Shown piece by piece: positions 1,075 to 19,195 of a stretch of 64,000 nucleotides of DNA (position 1 is its first letter; the number at the start of each line of letters is the position of its first letter). The position numbers were made by a program, and so were the translations under genes. A model generated the notes under the pieces. The model searched no databases and was not told where the DNA came from. It saw only the letters and a program-made list of their open reading frames with translations. The DNA lies in sequence record MW822008.1; one strand, written 5' to 3'.

Positions 1075-1164
1075 ACTGAATTTTGGGCGTAACTATGCAC
1101 CCGGTGGGCTTGAGTCTTTCTCGACTTGATGGAACTATTATACAGTACTGAAAAAATAAAGCAA
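1075..1164 (-). ncRNA. sRNA family 1 unit with own promoter
   Basis: Minus-strand TTGCTT-16-TATAAT (1164-1137); GTC-GAGAAA-GAC hairpin; core CCCACCGGGTGCA (1108-1096). Confidence 0.6.
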
Positions 1165-1198
1165 TACCCTGGAAGCAAAAAAGTTTTAATTAATTTGC

Positions 1199-1286
1199 TT
1201 GCTATCCTGGGCCGGACTATGGTACTATATTTCAGTACTGAGAAAGTGCGTTTACCTGCTAGGGTGCGGGAGTGTATCCTTTTTTT
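1199..1286 (+). ncRNA. sRNA family 1 unit (variant core)
   Basis: TTGCTA..TACTAT promoter; GTACT-GAGAA-AGTGC hairpin; CCTGCTAGGGTGCGGGAGTGTATCC (1255-1279) then T7. Confidence 0.55.
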
Positions 1287-1294
1287 ATATCTTG

Positions 1295-1380
1295 AATTTT
1301 GGGCGTAATTTCGCACCCTCTGGGGTTTCCGCTTTCTCGCGTCTATGTAGTAATTATACGCTTTTTCAGGATCAAGTCAA
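1295..1380 (-). ncRNA. sRNA family 1 unit
   Basis: Minus-strand TTGACT-16-TATAAT (1380-1353); CGC-GAGAAA-GCG hairpin; core CCCCAGAGGGTGCG (1325-1312). Confidence 0.6.
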
Positions 1381-1756
1381 TACCTAAAAACAAAATAATT
1401 GAAAATAATTTAACGCGTTTAAACGGCCCGTAAAGCCCTGGAATGATTGGAATGGTGCAAATGTATAGCTTATGTGTATTAATGCGTTAGAATGCGTCTG
1501 AGGCCGTTTTACGGGGTATGGGGATGATTTGGTGGATTGATTCAGTACTGAATAATAGTACTACTATATAGAAAGATAGTTCCCCTGGATGGTTGCAGTA
1601 CTGAATGATAGTACTGAATAATAGTTCCCCTATATAGAAAGAAAACTATTTTAAAAGTATTTGTAGAAAGTACTTGCAAACTAAGTTTAACGGCGTATAA
1701 TGTTTTACATCGAGAGCGGGAACACTTCCCGCTACATATTACGAGAGATTAAAACG

Positions 1757-2119
1757 ATGGCGACTCAAATCACTAAAATTATTGCTAACCTGGTTAACTT
1801 TCGCGACGAGATGAAAGATCTTCCGGCAGAAACGGTAAAAATTCACATTTCAGCTTATCGGGAACTTATTGCAATGTTACCGCTTAAGCGTGAACAATAC
1901 GCCGCGACCGTGATGCTTGATGCGATGATCCATAAGATGATCGCCAGTGATTTAACGATGGTTTATCAGTATATGGGCGAAAATTTCGCGGTGTATAGTA
2001 AACCAGTACCAGGAATGGAAAGTACAGAAGTATTACACGGTTTAAATTTAAAACAAGATGCATGGGATAATATGCCTCGTTTCCTGGTATGGGCTGACAG
2101 TGGCAAAATTTACGAATAA
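1757..2119 (+). CDS. Early hypothetical protein
   Basis: ORF; start moved to the ATG after the cassette hairpin. Confidence 0.85.
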   Translation: MATQITKIIANLVNFRDEMKDLPAETVKIHISAYRELIAMLPLKREQYAATVMLDAMIHKMIASDLTMVYQYMGENFAVYSKPVPGMESTEVLHGLNLKQDAWDNMPRFLVWADSGKIYE

Positions 2120-2213
2120 GTTTAATAAAGTACTTGCAAACTAAGTTTAAAAGCGTATAATACTTTACATCAGGTGGGGAATAGTTCCCCACTATAATTA
2201 AGAGATTAATTTT

Positions 2214-2447
2214 ATGAGTACTATTTTAACTGTTTCTCAATCCGTTGCACTGACTGACCTATTAAACGCTTTAAGCCGTTGCACTGAGGTTGGCTTGTTT
2301 GATGTGGTTGACGTTGCACCGGACGTTATTAATCATTTTTGTGATGCGATGGAAGAATGTAAGGAAGATGATAGCCGTATGATGGCGGTCGCCTTTGAGG
2401 AAGTACAGCCGGGTGAGATCAAAGGTTTACCAGTACTGAAAAAATAG
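2214..2447 (+). CDS. Early hypothetical protein
   Basis: ORF after cassette promoter. Confidence 0.8.
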   Translation: MSTILTVSQSVALTDLLNALSRCTEVGLFDVVDVAPDVINHFCDAMEECKEDDSRMMAVAFEEVQPGEIKGLPVLKK

Positions 2448-2529
2448 TACTTGCAAACTAAGTTTAAAAGCGTATAATACTTTCTATCAGGTGGTGAATA
2501 GTTCCCCACTATATAAGAGGATTAAAAAA

Positions 2530-2769
2530 ATGGCTAAATCAAAAATGTTCTTAGGTCACAAAAACAAAACTCATTGGAATGTAAGCCTTTGGATTAATAA
2601 CGATGAGTCATTGTACCGGTTGGCCCAGGACTTTATTAATGATAGCACTAATCGCAATGATGCGGCCCGTCATATGATGCTATTTTTAGAACAGACTGGA
2701 CAAGATAAAACACCGGACGGATTCAAATATAGCACTACTGCGATCCGTGCGGCGATGGTTGGAATGTAA
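2530..2769 (+). CDS. Early hypothetical protein, paralog of 4570
   Basis: Shares GHKNKTxWNVSLWINNxESLYRLAQ and TPDGFKYSTTAIRAAMVGM. Confidence 0.85.
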   Translation: MAKSKMFLGHKNKTHWNVSLWINNDESLYRLAQDFINDSTNRNDAARHMMLFLEQTGQDKTPDGFKYSTTAIRAAMVGM

Positions 2770-2855
2770 TAGAATTTATTTAAAGTACTATCATTTTTTT
2801 GCGATAGTACTTTATAATAGTGTTTTATTCATACACCAACGATAAGGGTAACAGC

Positions 2856-3122
2856 ATGAATATTAAGTATTTTGCGACGCGTGAACAAGCTCGGATCGCC
2901 GCACGCCAGGACGGGGCAACGTTTAAAGATATGGGAGCGGGATCGGCAAGTGGTGAACGTTGGGCCATTGTAAAGCGTAGTACCGCCAGATCATTACAGT
3001 ACTGGTTAGCGGCGTTAAAAAGTCCCGATAGTGTATCGCGTCGAGTGGTAGAAATAAAGCTCGACCGAAAGGGCAACCGCGTGACCGTGTACCGTACTAA
3101 AAAGATTGCAGTACTTGAATAA
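2856..3122 (+). CDS. Early hypothetical protein, paralog of 15228
   Basis: Shares ATRExARIxARxxGAxFKDMG and DRKGNRVTVY. Confidence 0.8.
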   Translation: MNIKYFATREQARIAARQDGATFKDMGAGSASGERWAIVKRSTARSLQYWLAALKSPDSVSRRVVEIKLDRKGNRVTVYRTKKIAVLE

Positions 3123-3209
3123 AAAGTACTTGCAAACTATGTTTAATGGCGTATAATGTTTTACATCGAGAGCGGGAACACTTCCCGCCTATAACCTGGA
3201 GTAATAAAA

Positions 3210-3440
3210 ATGACTAATATGTATATGACTGAAGTTAAAACCGTAAAAGATACTACCACGAATAAAACTACTTACTTACAGCGGATCTGCGGTGTATGGC
3301 AACGTATCAGCAAATCAAAGTACTTTAAATTAACATCATATGCAAACCGTTCGGATTCATTCAGTACTGAAATAAAAGGTAATAAAGTACACCAATACGG
3401 CACTTATTATTATTATAGCCTGGACGCGATTGCAGTATAA
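3210..3440 (+). CDS. Early hypothetical protein
   Basis: ORF, GGAG RBS, cassette promoter. Confidence 0.8.
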   Translation: MTNMYMTEVKTVKDTTTNKTTYLQRICGVWQRISKSKYFKLTSYANRSDSFSTEIKGNKVHQYGTYYYYSLDAIAV

Positions 3441-3470
3441 GCAGTTTACAAATCTTTACAATTGCCGGTA

Positions 3471-3555
3471 TTGACTTATTTTGTCAGTACTGGCATAATG
3501 TATTCATTGGCAGATAAGCCGTAGCCCATAGGGTGCGGGAGTGTATCTATAGAAA
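3471..3555 (+). ncRNA. sRNA family 1 unit
   Basis: TTGACT-17-CATAAT; GGC-AGATAA-GCC hairpin; core CCCATAGGGTGCGGGAGTGTATCT (3525-3548). Confidence 0.6.
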
Positions 3556-3564
3556 AAGTAGTTT

Positions 3565-3643
3565 ATTACAGTTACAATTGTGCACCCGGTGGGTTAGCTG
3601 TTGTCATGGGGTATATTATGCCAGTACTTGATAATGCTGTCAA
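3565..3643 (-). ncRNA. sRNA family 1 unit
   Basis: Minus-strand TTGACA-17-CATAAT (3643-3615); core CCCACCGGGTGCACAATTGTAAC (3593-3571). Confidence 0.6.
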
Positions 3644-3723
3644 TACTTTTTTTACTATTCAGTACTGAAAACTATTTTTAAAAAGTACTTGCAAACTATG
3701 TTTAAAGGCGTATAATGTTTTAC

Positions 3724-3798
3724 ATCAGGACGGGGAACGAAATAAGTAACTCCCCGTTAAGTAGCCCAGGAGTAAGGCACACGAAAAACTCCCCTGAT
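3724..3798 (+). ncRNA. sRNA family 2 (three-way junction)
   Basis: Lies between two promoters with no ORF; stems ATCAGG/CCTGAT, ACGGGGA/TCCCCGT, GGAGT/ACTCC. Confidence 0.65.
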
Positions 3799-3866
3799 AA
3801 AATAGTTTGACAAATGTTTTTAAAAGCGTATAATACTTACATCAACTACTGAATGAGGGTTACAAA

Positions 3867-4478
3867 ATGAAAACTATCACTACTACTACTTTCGTTATGG
3901 ATTTTTCTGAATTGAACGCAGAACAAAAAACGTCAGCTATCGAACTGGTTCGGGAACGTGAAAAAAACTTAAACGATGATTATTTTTCTGAAAGTGAAAT
4001 TGAATACTATAAAGAAACAGTACTACCGGAATATGGCATTAATGACGCTGATTTACGTTTCAGTGGCTTTTGGTCCCAGGGTGACGGTGCATCAATCAGT
4101 ACTGACCACGTTGACGCAGTGAAGTTTTTACGCAAGGTAAGAGCATTAACTAAGTATCGCTCAATCCGTCACTTGCTGAATGAAGATGATTTGGCGATGA
4201 GTGTAAAGCGTTCTCACTCCCACTACTCGCATGAAAACACTGTAAGCGGGTACATTGAATCGGCTTACACTGATTTAACCGCAAAACAAGAAACGTTAGT
4301 TAATGAGCTTGAGGAACTACTCACTGAAACTATTCGTGAATTATCCCGCAAGTTGTACCGTGATTTAGAGAATGCATATGAGGATCAATTCACTACTGAA
4401 AACATTACGGCACTGATTGAGGGTAACGAATATCAATTCAATGTTATTGATGGCGTAGTAGAATCAATCGAATATTAA
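3867..4478 (+). CDS. Conserved protein of the FSGFWSQGDGA family (often auto-labelled antitoxin of TA stability system; function unproven)
   Basis: Motif FSGFWSQGDGAS and N-terminal FSELNAEQKTSAIE. Confidence 0.6.
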   Translation: MKTITTTTFVMDFSELNAEQKTSAIELVREREKNLNDDYFSESEIEYYKETVLPEYGINDADLRFSGFWSQGDGASISTDHVDAVKFLRKVRALTKYRSIRHLLNEDDLAMSVKRSHSHYSHENTVSGYIESAYTDLTAKQETLVNELEELLTETIRELSRKLYRDLENAYEDQFTTENITALIEGNEYQFNVIDGVVESIEY

Positions 4479-4569
4479 TTTAAAAAAGTACTTGCAAACT
4501 AAGTTTAAAAGCGTATAATACTTTATATCGAGGCGGGGAGTGGTTCCCCGCTCAAACGAGGATTTAAAA

Positions 4570-4809
4570 ATGGCTAGTTCTAAAACTTACAACGGGCACA
4601 AAAACAAAACTCAATGGAATGTAAGCCTTTGGATTAATAACGGTGAGTCATTGTATCGGCTTGCACAAAGTTGTATCGCACAAAGTAGAACTAAAGATAT
4701 TGCAGCGGAATGTATGTACCGCAGATTAAAAGCCAACGGTACTACTACAACGCCGGACGGTTTTAAGTATAGCACTACTGCGATCCGTGCTGCAATGGTT
4801 GGAATGTAA
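4570..4809 (+). CDS. Early hypothetical protein, paralog of 2530
   Basis: Shared motifs with 2530. Confidence 0.85.
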   Translation: MASSKTYNGHKNKTQWNVSLWINNGESLYRLAQSCIAQSRTKDIAAECMYRRLKANGTTTTPDGFKYSTTAIRAAMVGM

Positions 4810-4866
4810 TATTCAGTACTGAGATAATGGCGGGTAATAGTTCCCGCCTTTACTGAGGGTTATCTA

Positions 4867-5127
4867 ATGAGTAAAGTAATAAAGTACAATGTGTTAAGCA
4901 AATCATTGTCTATCAGTGAATGCACCGATGGTTTTTGGATGTACGATGAAACGCGTGGCATGAATTTAGCTATGCGTGCAAAAACTGCTGAGGCGGCGTA
5001 TATTCAAGCACTGGAATACTACCAGGAACGTTTAAAGGAAGTAGAAGAAGATTATAAAAGCCTCAAAGCGAAAGTAGATCATTTCGTCGGTCAATTCATC
5101 GAGGAAGACGACGACAAACAATATTGA
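4867..5127 (+). CDS. Early hypothetical protein
   Basis: ORF, GAGG RBS after hairpin. Confidence 0.8.
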   Translation: MSKVIKYNVLSKSLSISECTDGFWMYDETRGMNLAMRAKTAEAAYIQALEYYQERLKEVEEDYKSLKAKVDHFVGQFIEEDDDKQY

Positions 5128-5213
5128 AAAAGTACTTGCAATTAGTTTTCAGTACTGTATAATGGTTTACATCAAAGGGAGAAATGGTTCTCCCTGGTAA
5201 TGAGGAAAATAAA

Positions 5214-5435
5214 ATGGCTAATATCACTACTCTTTCCCAACTGGAAGCACTGGTTAAATCTATGCGGGAACATGCCGACAAAATCGGCGTACAAGATCCA
5301 GCCGTTTGCTTCTGCGACGAATTGAATGATGATACCCTGGTAATAGCAGAAGTCCAGGACGTTTCTAACTATTCATCGCGTTACACTGGCGGCGTAGCAA
5401 ATAAAGGTGACTTCTGTTTATACCTTACAAAATAA
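5214..5435 (+). CDS. Early hypothetical protein
   Basis: ORF; start after cassette hairpin. Confidence 0.8.
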   Translation: MANITTLSQLEALVKSMREHADKIGVQDPAVCFCDELNDDTLVIAEVQDVSNYSSRYTGGVANKGDFCLYLTK

Positions 5436-5440
5436 CAACG

Positions 5441-5470
5441 CGGGGAGATAATAACTCCCCGTTACTTTTT
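5441..5470 (+). terminator. Intrinsic terminator
   Basis: CGGGGAG/CTCCCCG stem then TTACTTTTT. Confidence 0.65.
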
Positions 5471-5479
5471 CAGTACTGA

Positions 5480-5570
5480 ATCATTTAATAGACGGATCTA
5501 TGCACCCGGTGGGTTAGTGACTGTTTCGTCTTGATGTAGTAATTATGCCAGTACTGGATGCACTTGTCAA
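5480..5570 (-). ncRNA. sRNA family 1 unit
   Basis: Minus-strand TTGACA-17-CATAAT (5570-5542); GAC-GAAACA-GTC hairpin; core CCCACCGGGTGCA (5513-5501). Confidence 0.6.
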
Positions 5571-5678
5571 CAACTATTTTTCAAATACTTTTTATTAAAA
5601 TACTTGCAATTAGTTTTTAAACGCGTATAATGTTTTGCATAGGGGGAGCGGTTCCCCTGGTAACTAAGGAATAATAAA

Positions 5679-5915
5679 ATGCTTGAACAAATCAAATCAA
5701 CGTCTTCGAATGTAACGGGAACGGTAGCACACTTTACTAGTGATGAATCGCGGGGCGTTCCCTATTGTGCTGTACATGTAAACACTGAGGGTAACTACTG
5801 GTTTACGGTTTACGGATCATATTCATTTGGACGGCCAGGGCATCAAAAAATTCTGGATAAAGTACAACCAACGGGTAAAAATATCACTGCTGAAATGTTT
5901 TATAAAAAATCATAA
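5679..5915 (+). CDS. Early hypothetical protein
   Basis: ORF, AGGA RBS. Confidence 0.8.
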   Translation: MLEQIKSTSSNVTGTVAHFTSDESRGVPYCAVHVNTEGNYWFTVYGSYSFGRPGHQKILDKVQPTGKNITAEMFYKKS

Positions 5916-5999
5916 AGTACTTGATAATAGTTTTTAGTACTGTATAATATTTTACATCGCAAGGGGGAGCGGTTCCCCCTGGTAACTAAGGATAATCAA

Positions 6000-6299
6000 A
6001 TGAAAATTGCAATCATCGCCCTGGCTTTATCTGTTTCCTCTTTCGCTGTTAATGCGTCATTAGATGTAAGTAGTGAAAAATTCATTCAGTGCACTGTTGC
6101 AATGACCGATGAAAGTACTGGCGAGATTGTTTTAAAGGATTTAGAGATCCAGCCGGAAGCATTTAAAAACGGGCCGTTCCATGAAGAAGACGAAAAAGGT
6201 AGCACGACAATTTATTACGATGCAAGTACTAAACGCGGTTCGGTCACTGTTATGGATACTGAGAAAGTAACTCATACTGGCGTTATTAATTGCCGTTGA
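6000..6299 (+). CDS. Exported protein with signal peptide
   Basis: MKIAIIALALSVSSFAVNA Sec-type leader. Confidence 0.75.
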   Translation: MKIAIIALALSVSSFAVNASLDVSSEKFIQCTVAMTDESTGEIVLKDLEIQPEAFKNGPFHEEDEKGSTTIYYDASTKRGSVTVMDTEKVTHTGVINCR

Positions 6300-6320
6300 T
6301 ATATACTACGGGGTAACATC

Positions 6321-6551
6321 ATGACTAAGCGAATTGTTTTACTTAACGAAAGCAGTACTACACAACTACTTAACGCCGTGCATTATGATATTGAAACGAG
6401 CGTTAATCTTATCAGTACTGTAGTACTGTTGGACACTGGAAAGGTCGCCAATGATAAAGCGATTGCAGGTATACTAACGGATCTTGAGCCTGGTAGCAGT
6501 GCATCAATAACGTTAAATGGTAAAGTGTTTAACATTTTACTTACTGATTAA
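6321..6551 (+). CDS. Early hypothetical protein
   Basis: ORF. Confidence 0.75.
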   Translation: MTKRIVLLNESSTTQLLNAVHYDIETSVNLISTVVLLDTGKVANDKAIAGILTDLEPGSSASITLNGKVFNILLTD

Positions 6552-6557
6552 GTACAT

Positions 6558-6579
6558 AGCCCACCTGGTGGGCTTTTTT
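6558..6579 (+). terminator. Intrinsic terminator
   Basis: AGCCCAC/GTGGGCT plus T-run. Confidence 0.85.
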
Positions 6580-6668
6580 GTTTTTGTAGTATCGTAGTAC
6601 TGAGATACTTTGAAAATAGTTTTAAAAAAGTAGTTGACATTACCGCAGAAAAGCGTAGAATGTATTAC

Positions 6669-6741
6669 ATCAAGACGGGGAGCACTAAGTAGACCGCCAG
6701 TAAGTCGAACGAAAAACTGGACACGTCGAGAAAACTTTGAT
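6669..6741 (+). ncRNA. sRNA family 2 variant forming the 5' leader of gene 6785
   Basis: ATCAAG/TTTGAT closing stem, TAAGTAG linker, CCAGT/ACTGG stem with AAG-N4-ACGAAAA loop. Confidence 0.55.
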
Positions 6742-6784
6742 ACACTAATAAACGTAAACTAAACTTTAATTGAGGATTTATAAA

Positions 6785-7267
6785 ATGGCTAATGTAAAAT
6801 CATTCATCAAAGCACTGGTAGCAAATGAAACTAACGTCGCGGCTGAGATCCTGGCTGAACTGGATAACGATACCATGAAAGCGGTACGCAATAATTTTAA
6901 CATCGCGTACAGTACTGCGAAAGAACTACAAGCAAATAAAGCGGCAGAAATTGAAGCGGCAAAGGCGGCCCGTGAAGCAGAACTACAAGCAACAATCGAA
7001 AGTATTCAGGCGGCAGTAGTTGGATTGGATCTGGAAGTAGTTACAGAGATGGCACAAAAAGCCCTGGCGGTTAAGTATGGGGAAGACAAGCCAGAAGTAA
7101 AAGCCAAAAAATGGATTCAGGAACGCGTAGCGGTAGTACTGGACAACGGGGAAGAATATCTGATTCCGGTGCGTGGTAACTGCATTGCGGTAGTACTGGA
7201 CGCGATTAACTCCAGTGGTATGACTCGCGAGGAATGGATCGAAGCTCATCGCAAAGTTGAAGCATAA
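6785..7267 (+). CDS. H-NS-like protein (tentative)
   Basis: Ala/Glu coiled coil, GLD linker, C-terminal DNGE..RGN..AV...A....G.....W, resembling the H-NS DNA-binding domain by eye. Confidence 0.45.
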   Translation: MANVKSFIKALVANETNVAAEILAELDNDTMKAVRNNFNIAYSTAKELQANKAAEIEAAKAAREAELQATIESIQAAVVGLDLEVVTEMAQKALAVKYGEDKPEVKAKKWIQERVAVVLDNGEEYLIPVRGNCIAVVLDAINSSGMTREEWIEAHRKVEA

Positions 7268-7288
7268 CAATTAAAGTACTGAATCACT

Positions 7289-7314
7289 AGCCCACTTATA
7301 CAGTGGGCTTTTTT
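7289..7314 (+). terminator. Intrinsic terminator
   Basis: AGCCCACT/AGTGGGCT plus T-run. Confidence 0.85.
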
Positions 7315-7333
7315 GTGTTTATCGTTTACCAGG

Positions 7334-7424
7334 CCACCAGCACCGCCTAGAAACGATTCTAACGCATTAAACTGATTATCTGATGCATCACCCTAGCTGG
7401 TGGCGTTAAGGTCGTTAGAATGCG
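7334..7424. other. Intergenic island with an inverted Chi pair and ATTCTAACG/CGTTAGAAT inverted repeat
   Basis: CCACCAGC 7334-7341, GCTGGTGG 7396-7403, arms at 7356 and 7413. Confidence 0.75.
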
Positions 7425-7551
7425 ATTGAGTGCGTTTAAAGTATTTTACAAAAAGTAATAAAAAGTACTTGCACGATTAAGAGATTAGCGTATAATGTTT
7501 TACATCGAGAGGGGGAAACGGTTCTCCTTCCAAATCAAAGGAATCAAAACA

Positions 7552-7779
7552 ATGGCTATTATCATTACTCGCGTATCTGGTACTACTGGCAACGAACAAG
7601 TAGTTGCAGTCATTACCAACAAGGAAGGTGCGGAATTGCAAAATGCAATGAATACCTGGGCCGTTAATGAGTTCGGTCAGTGGGCAAGTGTAGCATACAT
7701 TGAAACCTATCAAGTGCCGTCGATTAGTTTAACTGATTTGGGCGTTGAGCGTATCCTTTGCCTTGATGAATTAAATTAA
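7552..7779 (+). CDS. Early hypothetical protein
   Basis: ORF; start after hairpin. Confidence 0.8.
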   Translation: MAIIITRVSGTTGNEQVVAVITNKEGAELQNAMNTWAVNEFGQWASVAYIETYQVPSISLTDLGVERILCLDELN

Positions 7780-7865
7780 AAAAGTACTTGCAAAGTAAAT
7801 CGAATAAAGTATAATACATTACATCAAGGGGAGAAAATGGTTCTCCCCACTACAAGGAAACTAAA

Positions 7866-8009
7866 ATGAAAACTTGTCAATGTGGTCAGAAATCTATTAC
7901 GGGTTTAAAGCGGGGCGTTGCTCTTTGCCAGTACCATTATAATTTACAAGTATGGGGTAAAGAATGGGCCGACCAGGTGGAAGCAGCAAAGAAAGCAAAA
8001 AGTAAGTAA
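7866..8009 (+). CDS. 47-aa Cys/His (zinc-finger-like) protein, below ORF-track cutoff
   Basis: MKTCQCGQKSITGLKRGVALCQYH...; AGGA RBS; cassette promoter. Confidence 0.7.
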   Translation: MKTCQCGQKSITGLKRGVALCQYHYNLQVWGKEWADQVEAAKKAKSK

Positions 8010-8088
8010 AAATATTATCACAGTACTATTGACATAGTTTGATAGTACTGGCATAATAGATTTTATCAAGACGACTAAGGAAAACAAA

Positions 8089-8301
8089 ATGGCTATCATT
8101 ACAAAAATCAAAGTAAACAAATCACTGGTTAAACTTGAACAAGTGAAAGCAGGTTATAAAGTATCGTGGTGCGGTATGTATCGGATGTTCGCAGATATTG
8201 ATGAAGCGATCAATTATTACAGCGACACGGTTAAAAACTTTGTTCGTGCTGATGTGGTTATGGCAGTGGCAGCACATAAAGCAGCGAAAGAAAGTAAGTA
8301 A
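8089..8301 (+). CDS. Early hypothetical protein, likely paralog of 11203
   Basis: MAIIxK start, YxVS and DEA pattern, same promoter class. Confidence 0.8.
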   Translation: MAIITKIKVNKSLVKLEQVKAGYKVSWCGMYRMFADIDEAINYYSDTVKNFVRADVVMAVAAHKAAKESK

Positions 8302-8390
8302 AAATATTATCACAGTACTATTGACATAGTTTGATAGTACTGGCATAATAGATTTTATCAAGACAACATATTAATTTAAGGAATACAAAA

Positions 8391-10259: not shown

Positions 10260-10272
10260 ATGAAAAAAGTGG

Positions 10273-10360
10273 TTGACTTCGGTCAGCCATTTTGCTATTA
10301 TATATTCATTGAGAGATAGCTCACTAGCCCACCGGGTGCATAAGTGTATCTATTATATAA
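10273..10360 (+). ncRNA. sRNA family 1 unit
   Basis: TTGACT-17-TATTAT; TGAG-AGATAG-CTCA hairpin; core CCCACCGGGTGCATAAGTGTATCT (10328-10351). Confidence 0.6.
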
Positions 10361-10473
10361 GTATTGAGTACTGAGAACTATTTTTAAAAAGTACTTGCAA
10401 ACTATCTCAATTGGCGTATAATGTTTTACATCGAGAGGGGGAACGGTTTCCCCTGGTAATAAGGAAACGAATC

Positions 10474-11660: not shown

Positions 11661-11730
11661 ATCCTTTACCCTATACAATGTCAGTACTAAACCGTTTATC
11701 TCATTAGAATGCGTTACAGGACGTTTGACA

Positions 11731-11928: not shown

Positions 11929-11932
11929 TCTA

Positions 11933-12015
11933 TTGACAATATCCTCCAGTACTGGCATAATACTTACATCAAGACGAGAACGTCACTAACCCATAGGGTG
12001 CACAAATGTAACTGT
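11933..12015 (+). ncRNA. sRNA family 1 unit
   Basis: TTGACA-17-CATAAT; GACG-AGAA-CGTC hairpin; core CCCATAGGGTGCACAAATGTAAC (11990-12012). Confidence 0.6.
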
Positions 12016-12259
12016 ATAATATTGATCAAAAAATGATCTGATCAATACTTGATCAATTTGCGTAAAGTAGTATAATTCTATGCAGTTGGTTAGACGAAAG
12101 GTTATGATTAGTAGTGCAAGTGTATAAAAATTTTCATGGTGTATCGTTCCGCACATATGGCAATGAATATGTGGTATCATGTGGATTGGAAAAAGTAAGA
12201 ACAAGTAATATTATTGTCGCATTACAGTACTATAGTATTTTTATAATGAGGTTAAAATA

Positions 12260-12517
12260 ATGGCTGTAGGATTCGCGAAAGATGGGGCCGAACAAGACGA
12301 GATTAACGCAGTGATTCAGGCCGCCGTTAACCACGCTAGAAAGCAAATTAACGCACAAATAGAATCACTGATACATTGCCTCGACTGCGGCGATATAATC
12401 CCTGAGAAACGACGCCAGGCCGTTAAGGGATGTAAGTACTGCATAACTTGCCAGGAGGATCATGATAGTACTTTTAAACGTCCCCCGCGTAATTGTTGGC
12501 ATAGATCTATGAGATAA
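12260..12517 (+). CDS. DksA/TraR C4 zinc-finger protein (YbiI-like)
   Basis: MAVGFAKDGAEQDEI N-terminus; CLDCGDIIPEKRRQAVKGCKYCITCQ. Confidence 0.9.
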   Translation: MAVGFAKDGAEQDEINAVIQAAVNHARKQINAQIESLIHCLDCGDIIPEKRRQAVKGCKYCITCQEDHDSTFKRPPRNCWHRSMR

Positions 12518-12592
12518 AAAGTATTGACAGTACTATCCAGTAGTGTTATAGTACTTACATCAAGGGGAAACATCTTCCCCTACTAAGAGGAA

Positions 12593-12787
12593 ATGAAAAT
12601 GGAAAACTTATCAAGTATTTTAGTACAAGATGATTTCGGTAATCCTGGAAGTGCTATCATTGTTCGGGGTAATAAAGCAACATTTGTTATTGCTGGTGGA
12701 CCTGTACAGCGTAGCATTAAAAACAATGCCGTTACTATTAATAATGTACGCTATCGCTTAGATAAAGAATTGATTCATAAACTGTAA
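12593..12787 (+). CDS. Early hypothetical protein
   Basis: ORF. Confidence 0.75.
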   Translation: MKMENLSSILVQDDFGNPGSAIIVRGNKATFVIAGGPVQRSIKNNAVTINNVRYRLDKELIHKL

Positions 12788-12814
12788 TATTAATTTAATA
12801 GAGGATAACAATAA

Positions 12815-13138
12815 ATGTACATTCATACTACTATCACAAAGGAAGTCCGTTGCCAGTTCGAAAGTATTCCGGGCGTATGTTTCATCACTGGTACGTTTTC
12901 CCCTGGTGATCGTGATAATCCAGTACTGTTACAATTACGCCATCCATCATGGGATAAAGCATTTGATCTACCGTTGAATGAATTCGCAACTACTGCTGAA
13001 AAGTACATTAAAAATATTCGCGAGAATGATCGACTATTCATTAATGCTTTCAGTGATTCCGCGTTAAGCGAGATCCACAGCGTATTGGTTGCAATCATGG
13101 AATCAATGGAGAAAACTAAATTCAAACAAGGTGAATAA
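12815..13138 (+). CDS. Early hypothetical protein
   Basis: ORF, GAGG RBS. Confidence 0.8.
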   Translation: MYIHTTITKEVRCQFESIPGVCFITGTFSPGDRDNPVLLQLRHPSWDKAFDLPLNEFATTAEKYIKNIRENDRLFINAFSDSALSEIHSVLVAIMESMEKTKFKQGE

Positions 13139-13221
13139 AAACTATTGACAAGATAATCTAGTACTGTATAATAAGTTACATGAAGGGGAGAAATGATTCT
13201 CCCCACTGAGAGGAAAGAAAA

Positions 13222-13434
13222 ATGCAAGGTCAACTAATCGTTCGTAAATGGTCTGATACTAACGCTAAACCGTGGGATGTACAATACATCGGACCGGATG
13301 GGGTATCACGTTATCAGCCTGGCGTAACGCATAGTACTGAGCAATATGCCGCCGCTCACCGCGAACGCCTGTTAGAATCCATGAAACAGGGATACGGTGA
13401 AAAATTCATTCAAGATCATTGGCTGAAAGATTAA
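13222..13434 (+). CDS. Early hypothetical protein
   Basis: ORF, GAGG RBS. Confidence 0.8.
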   Translation: MQGQLIVRKWSDTNAKPWDVQYIGPDGVSRYQPGVTHSTEQYAAAHRERLLESMKQGYGEKFIQDHWLKD

Positions 13435-13451
13435 TATAAGGAGTACAGCTT

Positions 13452-13544
13452 ATGCAAATGAATCCGATGATTATTGTGTTAGCTGTACTTATGATCATTC
13501 ATGCAATAGTAAAAGTATTAACGCAATCAGGAGTAATAAAATGA
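13452..13544 (+). CDS. 30-aa membrane peptide
   Basis: AAGGAG RBS; hydrophobic. Confidence 0.55.
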   Translation: MQMNPMIIVLAVLMIIHAIVKVLTQSGVIK

Positions 13545-13714
13545 TTCAAGTAGAATTATCAGTACTGAAAGATCTGTTTTATCGGTTAGGTACTACTGGC
13601 GAGTATCCTAAAAGTGATACCGCAAAACTTTTTGTATCACTCGACTTATGGCAACGCGAACAATTAGTAATGTCCTGGCGTAAAGGTAAAGCAGATAGCG
13701 AGGTGAAAGCATGA
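13541..13714 (+). CDS. 57-aa early protein
   Basis: AGGAG RBS; ATGA overlaps at both ends. Confidence 0.7.
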   Translation: MIQVELSVLKDLFYRLGTTGEYPKSDTAKLFVSLDLWQREQLVMSWRKGKADSEVKA

Positions 13715-13860
13715 AAGAATTCTTATTCGAAGTAGTGTTTCAAGGTGTCGGTAGTAACCAACTGATTCGCTCAAGTGGTTATAATGTTAACCAGGCATGG
13801 AATAACATTAAACAAATGTACCCGAACGCTATCACCTATCGCAACCCGAAAGAAGTTTAA
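13711..13860 (+). CDS. 49-aa early protein
   Basis: GAGGTG RBS; ATGA overlap; terminator follows. Confidence 0.7.
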   Translation: MKEFLFEVVFQGVGSNQLIRSSGYNVNQAWNNIKQMYPNAITYRNPKEV

Positions 13861-13878
13861 AAATATTTGAAAAAGGGA

Positions 13879-13967
13879 TTGACTCCGGTCAGTCCCTTTG
13901 CTATTATATACGCATAGAAACAAATCAGCCCACAGGGTGCATAAATGTATCTATTGTTTGCTGGTGG
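13879..13967 (+). ncRNA. sRNA family 1 unit
   Basis: TTGACT-17-TATTAT; core CCCACAGGGTGCATAAATGTATCT (13929-13952); Chi at 13960. Confidence 0.6.
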
Positions 13968-14033
13968 CTAGTACTGAAAACTATTTTTAAAAAAGTACTT
14001 GCATTGTACTTAGAATCAAGTATAATGTTTTAC

Positions 14034-14106
14034 ATCAGGACGGGGAACGAAACAAGTAACCCCGTTAAGTAGTCCAGGAGTAAGACATAAGAAAACCTCC
14101 CCTGAT
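14034..14106 (+). ncRNA. sRNA family 2 (three-way junction)
   Basis: Same stems and linker as 3724; lies between two promoters with no ORF. Confidence 0.65.
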
Positions 14107-14175
14107 AAAATAGTTTGACAATAGAAAGTAAACGAGTATAATACTTACATCAACCACTGATAAGGAAACATTAAA

Positions 14176-14451
14176 ATGCGGATTCTACTGACAGCTAACG
14201 AAATCGAACAAGTACTGACTACTAACCTGGAAGACTGGAAACGTGAAGCAGATATCCAGGCGGTTCAACTGCTTAACGATAAGTTAACGCCGGATGACTT
14301 AAGCAAGATTGTAGATCCTCAATTCTACGAAGATATCCACGACACCGCGTTAAGCGTCGAGGATGTACTAGATAAGCACTACATTGATATTGATTTGCAG
14401 GTTTACGGTCGTAAAAACTTTATCACTATTCACGACATTTATAATAATTAA
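14176..14451 (+). CDS. Early acidic hypothetical protein
   Basis: ORF, AAGGA RBS. Confidence 0.8.
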   Translation: MRILLTANEIEQVLTTNLEDWKREADIQAVQLLNDKLTPDDLSKIVDPQFYEDIHDTALSVEDVLDKHYIDIDLQVYGRKNFITIHDIYNN

Positions 14452-14537
14452 GTATTGACAAAGTATCTTAGTACTGTATAATAGTTTACATCGAGAGGGG
14501 GAATGGTTCCCCTCCTAACAAAGAGAGAGAAATAAAA

Positions 14538-14720
14538 ATGGCTAAATGCACTATCTGCAAGAAAGAAATAGTATTAGTTCCAAGTGCCCGTGAACGTGCC
14601 GCTCGGTTCGGTGGCAAAGCGTCAGACTATACAAAAATGTTTACTACCCATGCAGCTTGCCAGGTAGCAAAACGTTCACAAGAAAGCGTAGAATTAATGC
14701 GTAAACTTTCCAAAAAATAA
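14538..14720 (+). CDS. Small zinc-finger-like protein
   Basis: CTIC...HAAC. Confidence 0.7.
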   Translation: MAKCTICKKEIVLVPSARERAARFGGKASDYTKMFTTHAACQVAKRSQESVELMRKLSKK

Positions 14721-14808
14721 GTATTGACAAAGTATCTTAGTACTGTATAATAGTTTACATCAAGTGAGGGGAAACGGTTCCCCTCCTAACAAAGAGAGAG
14801 AAATAAAA

Positions 14809-15132
14809 ATGGCTATGATCCTTGCCCAGAAAGTAGAACTGAAAATTGTAACCTCCTTTGACATTAAAGTTAATCGGTGGACTGATTCACACGGCAATAC
14901 TTACCACTCTTGCTACGTGTCCGCGTTAATTGGCGACCGCTGGGAAGACTTGGGACATGAAACCTTTACTTACGGTTACGGTACACAAGGAGAATACACG
15001 GGCTTGGAGATCATTAAAGAAACCGTTATAGGTTTCAACCCGAAAGAAAAAGTTATTCACCGCATCGAAAAAGAGATTAACAAAGAAATAACAGTTCGCT
15101 ACTACGATGTAAAACGTAAGAAAGACATGTAA
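14809..15132 (+). CDS. Early hypothetical protein, paralog of 8391
   Basis: Shared motifs with 8391. Confidence 0.85.
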   Translation: MAMILAQKVELKIVTSFDIKVNRWTDSHGNTYHSCYVSALIGDRWEDLGHETFTYGYGTQGEYTGLEIIKETVIGFNPKEKVIHRIEKEINKEITVRYYDVKRKKDM

Positions 15133-15227
15133 TAGAATCCATTTAAAGTACTATTTGACATTGCCCAGATAGTACTTTATAATAGACTCTAACTTGTAGT
15201 ACTAACTCAACTAATAGGATGTATACC

Positions 15228-15623
15228 ATGATTACTAAATTCTACGCTACCCGTGAAGCTGCCCGTATTGTTGCACGCGAGGAAGGAGCAGCATTTAAAG
15301 ACATGGGCAAAGATGCACCGAAAGGTCAACGCTGGGCCGTACAGTTCAAAGAAATCTCTGATATTGTGAATTCACCTGAGCCAGTACTAACAGCAGCAGA
15401 ACTAAAACGAGCGGATTTACTGGCGGCAGTACTTAACGCACAAGATGAATTTATCGCTGATTCTGATATCAAAGTACAGACAAACCATACCGCTTGGACT
15501 CACGCGGATCACCTGGCAAACCTTAAGCGTCCAAGTGAACTGGTTCGCAACCAGAAAGAGATCCGACACGACCGTAAGGGTAATCGTGTAACAGTATACA
15601 GTAAACGCCGCCAGGTTATCTAA
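15228..15623 (+). CDS. Early hypothetical protein, paralog of 2856 with a longer middle
   Basis: Shared N- and C-terminal motifs with 2856. Confidence 0.8.
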   Translation: MITKFYATREAARIVAREEGAAFKDMGKDAPKGQRWAVQFKEISDIVNSPEPVLTAAELKRADLLAAVLNAQDEFIADSDIKVQTNHTAWTHADHLANLKRPSELVRNQKEIRHDRKGNRVTVYSKRRQVI

Positions 15624-15645
15624 TAACTTGCAGTACTAACAACAC

Positions 15646-15670
15646 GGCGGGATCAGTTCCCGCCTTTTTT
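15646..15670 (+). terminator. Intrinsic terminator
   Basis: GGCGGGA/TCCCGCC plus T6. Confidence 0.85.
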
Positions 15671-15685
15671 ATAGGATAAACTAAA

Positions 15686-15940
15686 ATGATTAAGGTACAA
15701 CTATCTAAAGATAATATCTTGCGGGTACACTATAAAGCACCACAGAGAATCATCACAAAGGCCGTACAGCTTGCTAATGAGTTTATTAATGGTAACCTAT
15801 TACCAAGGAAGTTAAGCAACGGAAAACTGCGTGTAATCGATGTAGACACTAACAACAGAATAGTAATTGAGAACACAGGAAAGATAAACCTATATGAACA
15901 CCAACAATATAATAAGAAAATAAAACTAATATCACGTTGA
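15686..15940 (+). CDS. ParE/RelE-like toxin-fold protein (tentative)
   Basis: 84 aa, basic; KA..L...F..G...PR.L......I.V....R......G...L..H..YN pattern. Confidence 0.45.
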   Translation: MIKVQLSKDNILRVHYKAPQRIITKAVQLANEFINGNLLPRKLSNGKLRVIDVDTNNRIVIENTGKINLYEHQQYNKKIKLISR

Positions 15941-15993
15941 CAGTACTCAATTGTTTTAGTATTATGTACACATACCAACACGGGAGAAACAAA

Positions 15994-16212
15994 ATGAAAT
16001 TATCTAAAATCGAAAAGAAAACTATTGATGAAGCAGTTAAGCACGGTTATACCTTTCGTAATGATTCACATTTTACCAATTTTCAACAAGGCCAAAGGAC
16101 TATTAAAAAACTAATTGACAAAGGTTTATTAGTTAAAGTAGATAACGGTAACGGCATTGAGTATCAGCCAACCCAAGACGCATTATCTTTAAAGAAATAT
16201 GCAATTATCTAA
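15994..16212 (+). CDS. Early hypothetical protein (possible winged helix)
   Basis: ORF; TIKKLIDKGLL segment. Confidence 0.7.
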   Translation: MKLSKIEKKTIDEAVKHGYTFRNDSHFTNFQQGQRTIKKLIDKGLLVKVDNGNGIEYQPTQDALSLKKYAII

Positions 16213-16269
16213 TTGACAGTACTCAAATGTTTTAGTACTATATGTACATACCAACACGGGGAAAACAAA

Positions 16270-16512
16270 ATGATTACTTTAGAAAAACGTATCAAAGAAA
16301 CTACATCGCTGGTGGAACTGTTAACAGTACTGAAATGCCGTACTACTCGGTTTAGTACACCGGACTTTATTAATATGGTTGATGTTAACGGTCGTTATCG
16401 CATTGCAGTAGAACATGGAACAGCGAAAGTATTCAGTACTAAAAACACTAAGGAAGTGATTCACGCGGTTAGTGTGAAAAAAGTGGTTGCCATTGATAGT
16501 AAAGTACTGTAA
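16270..16512 (+). CDS. Early hypothetical protein
   Basis: ORF; promoter/leader duplicated from the 15994 gene. Confidence 0.75.
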   Translation: MITLEKRIKETTSLVELLTVLKCRTTRFSTPDFINMVDVNGRYRIAVEHGTAKVFSTKNTKEVIHAVSVKKVVAIDSKVL

Positions 16513-16543
16513 GATAGTTTCATTAACTCAAGGAGAACATGCA

Positions 16544-17128
16544 ATGCGTAATTATACTAAATTCATCCGTACCCTGTCAGAAATGGAAACCAACAAAGAG
16601 ATCCTTTCAGCTTGTCGGTTAGCTGGTCTGGAGATCATCGGTGCGGGTTCTTCCCGTATTGTATTCGCTTTAAATGATCGGTTAGTGATTAAGGTCGCCA
16701 ATTGTGATGCGGGTGTAGAACAAAATGAAACTGAATGTAAGGTATGGAATTTTTTAGACTATGACCGCCCTCAATTGAAACAGTACTTTGCAAAGGTGCA
16801 TATGCATTTATGCGATCCTGATAATATGTTTATCGTTATGGATCGGTTGAGTACTGCAAGCAAAGGCAGTGTAAAGCACGTTAACGCGTGCAACGAATTA
16901 AAGTACAATATTAAACGTAATGCCATTGAACGCCAGCACCGCTTTGCTGATGCACTACAACACGTCGATGATACATTATCAACACTAACGATAAGAGATA
17001 TCAGAAAACAGAATATCGGCCAGGATCGTAATGGACTTATTAAAGTACTTGATTACGGTTTAACCCGCAATATCTGGAATCAGTACTATAAAAAGCGTGA
17101 TGTGGCAGCAAGTAAAGTAACACGATAA
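16544..17128 (+). CDS. Protein-kinase-like enzyme
   Basis: IGAGSSRIVF Gly-loop, VIKVA Lys, NETE alphaC Glu, RDIRKQNIG catalytic loop, VLDYG. Confidence 0.85.
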   Translation: MRNYTKFIRTLSEMETNKEILSACRLAGLEIIGAGSSRIVFALNDRLVIKVANCDAGVEQNETECKVWNFLDYDRPQLKQYFAKVHMHLCDPDNMFIVMDRLSTASKGSVKHVNACNELKYNIKRNAIERQHRFADALQHVDDTLSTLTIRDIRKQNIGQDRNGLIKVLDYGLTRNIWNQYYKKRDVAASKVTR

Positions 17129-17146
17129 AAAAGATTAAAAAAGGGA

Positions 17147-17235
17147 TTGATTTCGGTCAGTCCCTTTGCTATTATATATTCATTGAGAGATAGCTCACTG
17201 ACCCACAGGGTGCATAAATGTATCTATTATATAAG
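17147..17235 (+). ncRNA. sRNA family 1 unit
   Basis: TTGATT-17-TATTAT; TGAG-AGATAG-CTCA hairpin; core CCCACAGGGTGCATAAATGTATCT (17202-17225). Confidence 0.6.
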
Positions 17236-17351
17236 TATTCAGTACTGAAAACTATTTTTAAAAAGTACTTGCATTGTACTTAGAATCAAGTATAATGTTT
17301 TATATCGAGAGGGGGGGAACGGTTCTCCCTCAAAGAATAAGGAATAAAATC

Positions 17352-17573
17352 ATGACTACAATGACTTGCATTTACGCTTCCAATCTTCTGAATGATGCGG
17401 CCTTTAATGTTGATTCAGAATATCAATGTTATCGGGATGAAAATAAAAAAGTTTTTGTAGTTGATAATAATGGTTTCCATATTGAAATACAATCCGGCTT
17501 CACTGGTGTTGATGGTAAATCAGTATGGGGCGTACAGGATGATAACGGTACATATCATTTTAAACGTAATTAA
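17352..17573 (+). CDS. Early hypothetical protein
   Basis: ORF; start after hairpin. Confidence 0.8.
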   Translation: MTTMTCIYASNLLNDAAFNVDSEYQCYRDENKKVFVVDNNGFHIEIQSGFTGVDGKSVWGVQDDNGTYHFKRN

Positions 17574-17657
17574 GTATTGACAAAGTATCTTAGTACTGTA
17601 TAATAGTTTACATCAAGGGGAGAATAGTTCTCCCCGATACTAAAAGGAAACAAAATT

Positions 17658-17930
17658 ATGTCCAGCTACTCCGCTACTATGATCATTAAAGATATGAACG
17701 GTAATCCTACTTCCGCTGGTGGATCATTTGGAAACATTAATTTAGATGGTCGGTTATCCATGCAATCAGCCATCGATGCAGCGAAAGAAGTTTTTAAGAA
17801 TGAATGCACTGTAAGCAAGCTGGATTATATGGGATTCGCTATCGAGAAAACTAATCGTTTTGTGAACTACAAAAATCCACTGATGATTGATACTAACCTG
17901 AAAGCTAACGAAGTGGAATACTTATTATGA
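17658..17930 (+). CDS. Early hypothetical protein
   Basis: ORF. Confidence 0.8.
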   Translation: MSSYSATMIIKDMNGNPTSAGGSFGNINLDGRLSMQSAIDAAKEVFKNECTVSKLDYMGFAIEKTNRFVNYKNPLMIDTNLKANEVEYLL

Positions 17931-18118
17931 CAGTTGAAGAAGTTAAAAAAGTACTGGCAGTACTACGCTATCATAATCATTGCAAGGTGAAGAATGATCC
18001 TGATTATGTTGATTCATCCCTGGAGGAAGACACATTAAACGCAATAAGCCATATGCAAACATTAGCAAAGCGTATGACCGAAAAGAATAGACCGGACTAT
18101 ATCGGAAATAAAATTTAA
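17927..18118 (+). CDS. Early hypothetical protein
   Basis: ORF, ATGA overlap. Confidence 0.75.
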   Translation: MTVEEVKKVLAVLRYHNHCKVKNDPDYVDSSLEEDTLNAISHMQTLAKRMTEKNRPDYIGNKI

Positions 18119-18204
18119 AAAGTACTTGCATTGTAGTTAGATTAACGTATAATGTTTTACATAGAGCGGGGGAATAGTTCTCCCGCCAGTCCAGGAGATA
18201 CACC

Positions 18205-18468
18205 ATGAACACTATCGAAATCACTATCAATGCACACGTATACGACAACGTAGTACTGCAAACTACTATGACCGCTAACGATACCAGTACTTTGCGGAAT
18301 ACTGTTATTAGTGCCGTATGTGCCGCTATCGGTGATGTCGCCCTGGAAAATGCAAAACACGTAAACGATGGTTTCACTATGTGCAAACGTGATAACGCAA
18401 AACATATCATCGTGGAAGGTTACGGCGGTGTAGAATTTAATGTTTATATGAAAAAAGTACTTGCATAA
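18205..18468 (+). CDS. Early hypothetical protein
   Basis: ORF, AGGAG RBS. Confidence 0.8.
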   Translation: MNTIEITINAHVYDNVVLQTTMTANDTSTLRNTVISAVCAAIGDVALENAKHVNDGFTMCKRDNAKHIIVEGYGGVEFNVYMKKVLA

Positions 18469-18535
18469 TAACTAAAACAAAGTATAATGTTTTGCATAGG
18501 GGGAGATGTCCTCCCCCACTAAAAGGAGTAATAAA

Positions 18536-18760
18536 ATGGCTAACTTTGATGAACTGATGCGGGAAGTAGCTAACCTGGCAGAAGAGAAAAAATCATTCGA
18601 TTCTATCTATAACACCTCTTACCGTGATTCAGTACTGGCATGTAACCAGGATCAAAAAGATGAACTAATCGCCACCTATCATGAAGCATGGAAGTACTAC
18701 CGACAATGGGAGAAAGAAGAAAGAGAGTCTACCATTGACGGCCTCAATAATCTAATCTAA
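18536..18760 (+). CDS. Early hypothetical protein
   Basis: ORF, AAGGAG RBS. Confidence 0.8.
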   Translation: MANFDELMREVANLAEEKKSFDSIYNTSYRDSVLACNQDQKDELIATYHEAWKYYRQWEKEERESTIDGLNNLI

Positions 18761-18836
18761 AAGTTTTATTTCAGTACTATTGACATAGCTTGATAGTACT
18801 GATGTAATAACTTTACTAACTACAAGGGGAAACATC

Positions 18837-19094
18837 ATGGAACAATTCACACAATATCGGGTAAATCCTCAAGCTATGGCCTACGTAGAAGACCATAAAA
18901 CGTTACCAGTACTGCAACCAGTTAAAGGCCATATCTATCGTGCAATGTCGTGGAGTACGGCCCAGGATGGCTATAAAACCGTAGCCGTTGGTATGTACTG
19001 CGGTAATGGTGAATGGTTTGATCCAAATAATCCGGTAGCCATTGACAGTACTGAAAAAATGAAATGGGCCGACTACATCGAAGATATTTCATAA
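18837..19094 (+). CDS. Early hypothetical protein
   Basis: ORF. Confidence 0.8.
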   Translation: MEQFTQYRVNPQAMAYVEDHKTLPVLQPVKGHIYRAMSWSTAQDGYKTVAVGMYCGNGEWFDPNNPVAIDSTEKMKWADYIEDIS

Positions 19095-19113
19095 AAAGAA
19101 TAAAAAAAAGGAG

Positions 19114-19195
19114 TTGACTTCGGTCCGCTCCTTTAGTACTATATACGCATAGAAACAAATCAGCCCACAGGGTGCATAAGTGTATCCAAAATATA
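19114..19195 (+). ncRNA. sRNA family 1 unit
   Basis: TTGACT-17-TACTAT; core CCCACAGGGTGCATAAGTGTATCC (19164-19187). Confidence 0.6.

Follow-up and report, generated by a model that had tools for sequence, protein, structure and literature searches.

The left 64 kb of the genome of Escherichia phage BF17 (MW822008.1, genus Asteriusvirus, 383,493 bp), referred to here as the window, carries eleven copies of a short element that looks like an undescribed family of early non-coding RNAs. All eleven lie between positions 1085 and 19187, inside the direct terminal repeat of the genome. Each copy joins a sigma70-like promoter to a module of ~50 nt, in which a conserved CAU start is followed by a first hairpin (hairpin 1) or an A/C-rich stretch, a linker of ~4 nt and the invariant CCCAnnGGGUGC, part of which can form a second hairpin with a variable 3' arm. 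We favor an RNA-level product because of the evidence for RNA helices, the strict orientation of the module and the variable distance between start site and core. A stand-alone RNA acting in trans is preferred over a cis-acting leader because about two fifths of the copies lead nothing and the others precede independent promoters. We place the probability of this interpretation, a multicopy early non-coding RNA that acts as RNA, on its own and in trans, at roughly 40%; its transcription, length, trans action and partner are what we infer here.

Copies of the core within the terminal repeat

The 12-mer CCCANNGGGTGC of the element has ten exact copies in the window, compared with 0.01 expected from shuffles, and an eleventh copy (1255+) is degenerate, belonging to a subtype that is also kept in Muenster and RaK2. 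With its filters switched off, a covariance model made from 14 seed copies picks up these ten (E ≤ 4.5e-4) and part of the eleventh (E 0.17), with no further copy in the 64 kb, including the 43 kb beyond the repeat. The copies are scattered over both strands at intervals of 58 nt to several kb, and every copy has a promoter of its own. The first 20 kb of the window match the BF17 record at 100% identity from record position 1. Window positions 1–20590 are identical to positions 362904–383493 of the record, with 0 mismatches in the sequence comparison, and are the 20.6-kb direct terminal repeat of BF17. As the repeat is present at both ends, each virion genome contains 22 copies of the element.

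A sigma70-like promoter in the correct orientation is found at all eleven copies, mostly in the form TTGAC(A/T)-17-TG-n-(C/T)AT(A/T)AT, with a TG extended -10 in eight of them. The gap between -10 and core is 21–28 nt, and the distance from start site to core ranges from 16 to 28 nt; this variable distance to the start site speaks against a promoter-spaced DNA element. In four plus units (10328, 13929, 17202 and 19164), the -35 lies inside a hairpin of the 12-bp class that resembles the terminator of the preceding gene, and one hairpin would both end the upstream transcript and start the unit. The gene promoters of the repeat have a conserved leader of their own, consisting of an ACAUC start, a GC-rich 5' hairpin, ACUAA, a Shine-Dalgarno sequence and ATG. 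The start, 5' hairpin and linker are common to units and gene leaders, with the core replacing the Shine-Dalgarno position, which makes the units a specialized relative of the phage's expression cassettes.

No BF17 unit itself contains an open reading frame (ORF). Downstream of each of the seven plus copies, within ~35–390 nt, comes a further sigma70-like promoter that precedes an annotated gene on the plus strand, and only 1255+ has a canonical terminator after it (stem 1261–1280 and T7). The four minus copies face no gene: two converge on plus units (1313- on 1255+, 3582- on 3525+), 1097- heads for another minus promoter and the genome end, and the RNA predicted for 5502-, ~105 nt long, ORF-less and antisense to all genes, ends at the terminator at 5441–5461.

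An initial annotation of the window had listed eleven core positions, each with its own oriented promoter. The ten exact cores and the eleven promoters were found again, with minus-strand coordinates that had been given one base low, a degenerate core at 1255+ and a spacing a little shorter than the 25–30 nt first noted. That orientation is tied to the promoter holds for the whole family, which is promoter-coupled with its direction locked to the promoter. The description of the units as short and followed by neither an ORF nor a ribosome-binding site fits the minus copies and convergent pairs, but not the plus copies, which precede a promoter and then a gene. The minus copies had also been taken as the sole minus-strand units; they are the only convincing antisense units, but one more minus promoter is present at 1039–1011.

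Copies in related phages were collected by scanning IMG/VR for a pattern and then applying the covariance model. This gave 94 matches, 84 of them distinct, on jumbo contigs including RaK2, 121Q, a contig as long as CBB (378,379 bp) and one as long as fHe-Yen9-04 (354,378 bp), and the element recurs in every Rak2-like jumbo phage examined. The 5502- unit, taken with its promoter and terminator, is 90–99% identical within Asteriusvirus and ~70–73% identical in the Klebsiella phages RaK2, K64-1 and Muenster. Muenster (repeat of 20,030 bp) and fENko-Kae01 (repeat of 19,736 bp) each have 10–11 copies, all within the repeat, of which six to seven run in gene direction and four are antisense, including convergent pairs. 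Together with BF17, confinement to the repeat holds in three genus-level groups with mapped termini. About 20 of the 84 copies form convergent pairs with cores 33–55 nt apart, ~16 are ORF-less and reach an intrinsic terminator 23–28 nt past the second hairpin, with an invariant AGUACUG in between, and the remaining copies lie upstream of a promoter or gene. Midway between convergent cores in pairs of the Klebsiella phages and of contig L003 there is an AT-rich perfect palindrome of the type GAGAATGATAATGATTCTC (contig L002 ~21600–21660; L003 ~8085–8130), which is absent from the convergent pairs of BF17.

The initial annotation recognized no family for the motif, and this was borne out by Rfam 15, which gave no match in the 64 kb at gathering thresholds and, at E ≤ 5 in the 1–20 kb region, only three weak matches, none over a unit. 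A scan for tRNA and tmRNA genes found none. A 106-nt unit gave no match at E ≤ 1 in 5,426 complete E. coli genomes, CRISPR arrays included, at a sensitivity of ~22 or more matching bases. Among 185,579 bacterial species genomes, an exact 16-base pattern had 108 isolated matches in unrelated taxa, none of them enterobacterial; one, in a metagenome-assembled genome of Eubacteriales, passed a loose promoter filter, and the matches are consistent with chance. No description of the motif was found in the papers searched on this phage group, including those on CBB, Sharanji, fEgEco12 and PA5oct, which cover promoters or terminal repeats.

Pairing in the module and the explanations for it

Hairpin 1 has 3–5 bp and a loop of 6–7 nt rich in A and G, and in about one fifth of all copies an unstructured A/C-rich segment takes its place. 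In BF17 it is present in eight of the 11 copies (Table 1). All four of its pairs change on both sides, and 93.9% of cells are paired in a model-fitted alignment, compared with 33–59% in slid controls. Because such an alignment leans towards structure, a direct count of hairpins was added. A stem of 4 bp or more sits where it is expected in 42 of the 81 distinct units, compared with 12.9 ± 3.1 in shuffles, and 16 different stem sequences are represented.

The second hairpin pairs the invariant GGGUGC with the 3' arm, and 89–91% of its cells are paired (89% on an unfitted, gapless MAFFT alignment). Opposite G, the 3' arm varies only between U and C, and opposite U only between A and G, with no unpaired cell at two positions (UA 37, UG 14, unpaired 0; GU 43, GC 8, unpaired 0), and two sequences carry a double change from C-G to G-C. 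With three G-U pairs, this stem exists on the transcribed strand only. A mini-hairpin of the form RCCC-loop-GGGU competes with it and is favored by RNAalifold. The base preceding CCC is A or G, both of which pair with U, in 44 of 51 copies, and the CCC/GGG loop has 3 nt, or 4 nt in a variant class, a variation that a dimeric DNA site would tolerate poorly and that thus favors RNA. Single-sequence folds switch between the CCC/GGGU and GGGUGC/3'-arm alternatives, which have near-equal predicted energy. The invariance of the core probably reflects a role in two alternative helices, which share GGGU and would exclude each other, a role as recognition site, or both.

These results agree with the initial annotation in that most copies start with a purine-loop hairpin whose stem sequence varies while pairing is kept, and in that an RNA product, or at least an RNA fold, explains the element better than a bare DNA site, given the covariation of hairpin 1 and a second hairpin restricted to the transcribed strand. 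The 7-bp stem with G-U pairs that it proposed for the plus copies, GGGTGC(A/G)-N4-TGTATC(C/T), fits six of the seven exactly; the seventh is not an exact match.

Three further candidate features were rejected. For a third helix between the 5' segment and the region past the second hairpin, cognate and non-cognate duplexes have the same median energy of -4.5 (p 0.46). A CsrA-type GGA loop is frequent in Klebsiella-phage copies and absent from most BF17 loops, and so is not a defining feature. A mini-ORF from an NUG in the second hairpin is not conserved in length and lacks its start in about one third of copies.

In the mechanism that we propose, each unit would be a strong early promoter for host RNA polymerase (sigma70) fused to the ~50-nt structured RNA module. 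Both terminal repeats would enter with the genome and bring 22 units, from which host polymerase would make many short non-coding RNAs with one common motif very early in infection. In these RNAs, the GGGU of the core could pair backwards with CCC in the mini-hairpin (loop of 3–4 nt) or forwards with the variable 3' arm, and the RNA would most probably act in trans, bound by a protein or RNA partner for titration or regulation.

Several observations weigh against this interpretation. Predicted folding energies are weak and unremarkable when terminators are left aside (z +0.3 to -1.8). Hairpin 1 resembles the generic 5' hairpin of the phage's gene leaders, so its covariation is no proof that the core works as RNA, and for the core itself the 5' arm and CCC never vary, which limits true compensatory evidence to two sequences. 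Most plus copies have no canonical terminator and their transcripts may continue into downstream genes. Transcription by host polymerase is predicted from promoter quality only. With respect to partners, and to the decoy or sponge that the initial annotation proposed, no RNA-binding protein was recognized in Pfam scans of 40 of the 51 proteins encoded in the repeat, and the window holds no complementary target, as GCACCC on the plus strand occurs only in the minus-strand units themselves.

A further point against a stand-alone RNA is one copy in a relative (L109:12601) that is a direct 5' untranslated region, with a ribosome-binding site and an ORF of 178 aa starting 25 nt past the second hairpin. 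This copy speaks for a cis-acting leader or attenuator, in which the mutually exclusive helices gate read-through, or in which the module serves stability, processing or anti-termination (put- or nut-like). The promoter-proximal position, the two competing hairpins of near-equal predicted energy and the layout taken over from the gene leaders, with the core at the Shine-Dalgarno position, also suit a leader, as does the second hairpin with its U run where it scores as an intrinsic terminator. It does so only in 1255+ and a few CBB-like copies; the other second hairpins have a G-U-rich stem of 5–7 bp with a mixed A/U tail, most of them lacking a U tract. Moreover, ~40% of copies have no downstream target, being antisense and meeting a terminator, or convergent, and the plus copies precede an independent consensus-like promoter. 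A sigma70 match of 10/12 or better is found in the 110 nt upstream of 28 of the 51 repeat genes, in comparison with six of 51 genes just outside the repeat, and with independent strong promoters at the genes, control by read-through seems unnecessary. We therefore regard a cis-acting leader as doubtful, although it is the likeliest of the alternatives.

A DNA site, with near-palindromic RCCC-N3-GGGY serving as operator or roadblock for a phage or host protein that times or shuts early promoters, is improbable. Its merits are a 12-mer that is invariant over several genera, a position just downstream of promoters and a partial dyad symmetry that becomes a perfect palindrome in the variant class ACCCT-NN-AGGGT. 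However, half-sites are spaced by either 3 or 4 nt, the base mirroring T can be either A or G, so that pairing in RNA is kept while the symmetry of the DNA is lost, and the distance to the start site is not fixed. In addition, the asymmetric GC extension points downstream in every case and the 3' arm obeys the wobble rules of RNA.

Slightly less probable again are recombination or 'empty' expression cassettes, that is, modules like the promoter-early stem-loops (PeSLs) for gene shuffling in a plastic repeat whose transcribed part is incidental. The repeat is indeed assembled from terminator hairpin, sigma70 promoter and leader in the manner of T4-type PeSLs (PMC2839356, PMC4122927), gene content is mosaic between relatives, and hairpin 1 of unit 3525+ has been replaced wholesale at the orthologous site in 121Q. 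Yet the invariant 12-mer and the wobble-compatible partner changes across genera indicate selection on the transcribed part; the copy number of 10–11, the ratio of 6–7 sense to 4 antisense copies and the convergent pairs are conserved between genera; and gene cassettes carry a different leader. Transcripts for replication priming or R-loops are very improbable: a promoter followed by a G-rich run (type GGGUGCGGGAG) and an AT-rich stretch, in both orientations and within the first DNA to enter the cell, would suit them, but ten to eleven origins in 20 kb are implausible, the pairs are convergent rather than divergent, and the evidence for intramolecular RNA pairing speaks against a persistent RNA-DNA hybrid.

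For the early non-coding RNA that we prefer, a bolder version seems unlikely: the element may be an early RNA weapon of the whole Rak2-like clade, ~22 copies per genome, whose invariant bistable motif would flood the cell within minutes and titrate an RNA-binding protein of defence or regulation that is conserved in enterobacteria, or modify the polymerase without a phage protein. If true, such a decoy or polymerase-modifying RNA would represent a new case in which a phage takes over its host by means of RNA. Rak2-like jumbo phages are studied as therapeutic phages, and hardly any product of their 20-kb terminal repeats has a known role. With 10–11 copies per repeat and the strongest class of host promoter, the element probably ranks among the earliest and most abundant products that infection yields, and it is invariant across Escherichia and Klebsiella phages and, tentatively, Pectobacterium/Erwinia and Yersinia phages. 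It gives the study of cell takeover by these phages a concrete target that RNA sequencing can test, and would extend the short list of phage non-coding RNAs by a new family.

The units and other features of the repeat

The coordinates of the eleven units are given in Table 1.

Table 1. Units of the element in BF17, named after the position and strand of their core (window coordinates)
Unit	Span	Strand	Core	Promoter	Module and surroundings
1097-	1085–1164	-	exact	TTGCTT-16-TATAAT	hairpin 1 AGUC/GACU; second hairpin GGGUG/CGCCC; model E 9e-9
1255+	1199–1287	+	degenerate: CCTGCTA replaces CCCANN, GGGTGC then at 1262		second hairpin and T7 run, terminator-like; convergent with 1313-
1313-	1301–1380	-	exact, CCCAGAGGGTGC	present	hairpin 1 CGC/GCG; second hairpin GGGUG/CGCCC
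3525+	3471–3548	+	exact		convergent with 3582-, cores 33 nt apart
3582-	3570–3643	-	exact		A/C-rich 5' segment in place of hairpin 1
5502-	5435–5570	-	exact	present	hairpin 1; AGUACUG; bidirectional terminator 5441–5461
10328+	10266–10351	+	exact	-35 within terminator-like hairpin 10266–10293	second promoter 10395–10422; gene 10474
11990+	11933–12013	+	exact		then GATC cluster, promoter 12049–12076, DksA/TraR-like gene
13929+	13872–13952	+	exact	-35 within hairpin 13872–13899	no hairpin 1
17202+	17140–17225	+	exact	-35 within hairpin 17140–17167	hairpin 1 UGAG/CUCA
19164+	19108–19187	+	exact	-35 within hairpin ~19108–19131	no hairpin 1; second promoter 19255–19283; gene 19337

The repeat of BF17 is collinear with the annotated 21,525-bp repeat of vB_Ec-M-J. 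Published terminal repeats have 20,993 bp in fEgEco12, where restriction digests confirm it, 20,668 bp in Sharanji and 22,456 bp in CBB. GC content falls from ~38% within the BF17 repeat to ~32% past its boundary, and gene architecture shifts there too, with operon-style overlaps among the genes just beyond. Every gene annotated in the window runs in the plus direction, except for one doubtful ORF of 29 codons. The few family matches among the repeat proteins are a DksA/TraR zinc finger (12260–12514, E 1.6e-10), a ParE-like toxin domain (15686–15937, E 6e-11, Pfam scan), a weak protein-kinase match (16544–17125) and two DUF7249 paralogues (2530–2766 and 4570–4806). Used as a locus query, the kinase-like protein recovered 121Q only.

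The left 1.7 kb of the genome is non-coding and contains ORF-less promoters of consensus grade, one on the plus strand at 366–393 (12/12 match) and the minus promoter at 1039–1011. Also in this region, ~20 units with an 8-bp period, of the types GGCTAGAT and GGCTAAAC, occupy 754–913; they could be iterons or serve packaging or recognition of the genome end. At 726–772, the arm of the second hairpin of minus-strand units recurs as two degenerate relics (repeat family D5).

The octamer GCTGGTGG, which we take to be the E. coli Chi sequence, occurs 11 times compared with 0.42 expected (585–604, 7334–7403, 11647, 12692, 13960, 16308, 17715 and 19222, among others), ten times inside the terminal repeat and eight times on the plus strand. 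Two of the copies form an inverted pair ~590 bp from the left end. Unit promoters of relatives have the octamer within their spacers (L003 near 4470; Muenster, L002, near 12020). This enrichment may protect the DNA ends from RecBCD.

Another frequent motif is the palindrome CAGTACTG, with 63 occurrences in the whole window against 0.49 expected (for example at 340, 1071, 5471, 17240 and 36883–63517); AGTACT has 252 in 64 kb, compared with roughly 20 from base composition. The palindrome is built into promoters (AGTACTGTATAAT; AGTACTTGCAA) and has a fixed place between the second hairpin and terminator of the units, and is also frequent within coding regions distant from the repeat.

Another ORF-less unit occurs twice, at 3689–3806 and 13990–14112, with ~90% identity between the copies; in each case it separates a core unit from the gene promoter that comes next. 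It consists of a TTGCAA/TTGCAT-16-TATAAT promoter and a structured RNA of ~75–85 nt with an AUCAGG/CCUGAU closing helix (z ~ -2.1). Between unit 11990+ and the promoter of a small ORF and the DksA/TraR-like gene, four GATC sites are clustered in 31 bp (12024–12054).

Comparison with known systems

Pseudo-ToxI repeats and RNA anti-CRISPRs are multicopy phage non-coding RNAs proposed to titrate a host protein, and the initial annotation had named them as precedents. ToxI-type RNAs are tandem repeats of ~36 nt under one promoter, next to a toxin locus or mimicking one, and RNA anti-CRISPRs resemble host CRISPR repeats. Both fit the element poorly. The BF17 copies are dispersed in both orientations under separate promoters and form no tandem array, and the only tandem array nearby, with its 8-nt period (754–913), does not contain the core. 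No ToxN-like match was found in the 40 of 51 repeat-encoded proteins scanned against Pfam, where the sole toxin-type match is ParE-like. The E. coli comparison described above, with its ~22-base sensitivity, likewise gave no similarity of a unit to genomes or CRISPR arrays.

Lambda nut (boxA/boxB) and HK022 put are anti-termination RNAs whose sequences directly follow early promoters and which act as RNA. By description the units are comparable with them, as they may combine a purine-loop hairpin with a conserved single-stranded element, as in nut, or two adjacent stem-loops, as in put. The candidate boxB-type feature is a covarying purine-loop hairpin, with loops of 6–7 nt, in ~80% of copies, dispensable in ~20%. 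The put RNA has two adjacent stem-loops in ~65–70 nt and heads an early operon, on which it acts in cis; the units have two supported hairpins ~50 nt apart. However, there are 10–11 units per repeat rather than two, many without a downstream operon (~40% of copies), antisense and convergent units head no operon, and no N-like protein was recognized by Pfam among the same 40 of 51 repeat proteins.

In the terminal repeat of PA5oct, RNA sequencing has revealed ORF-less, highly transcribed non-coding RNAs (PMC7318152). PA5oct is a distant relative of the Rak2 group, and its RNAs are likewise encoded in a long direct terminal repeat, but they are single-copy, with lengths of 236 and 451 nt, and its 39-kb repeat has no match to the covariance model.

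T4-type PeSL cassettes place near-consensus sigma70 promoters just 3' of terminator stem-loops, among small early genes of unknown function (PMC2839356, PMC4122927). The BF17 units resemble them in having a sigma70-like promoter throughout, an upstream stem-loop overlapping the -35 in four units, stems of the type A3G3-loop-C3T3 in BF17 and a location in a plastic region. They differ in that the -35 of those four units lies inside the stem and that ~40% of units face no gene. Finally, PeSLs end in a Shine-Dalgarno sequence and a start codon, whereas the BF17 units carry the invariant core and the second hairpin.

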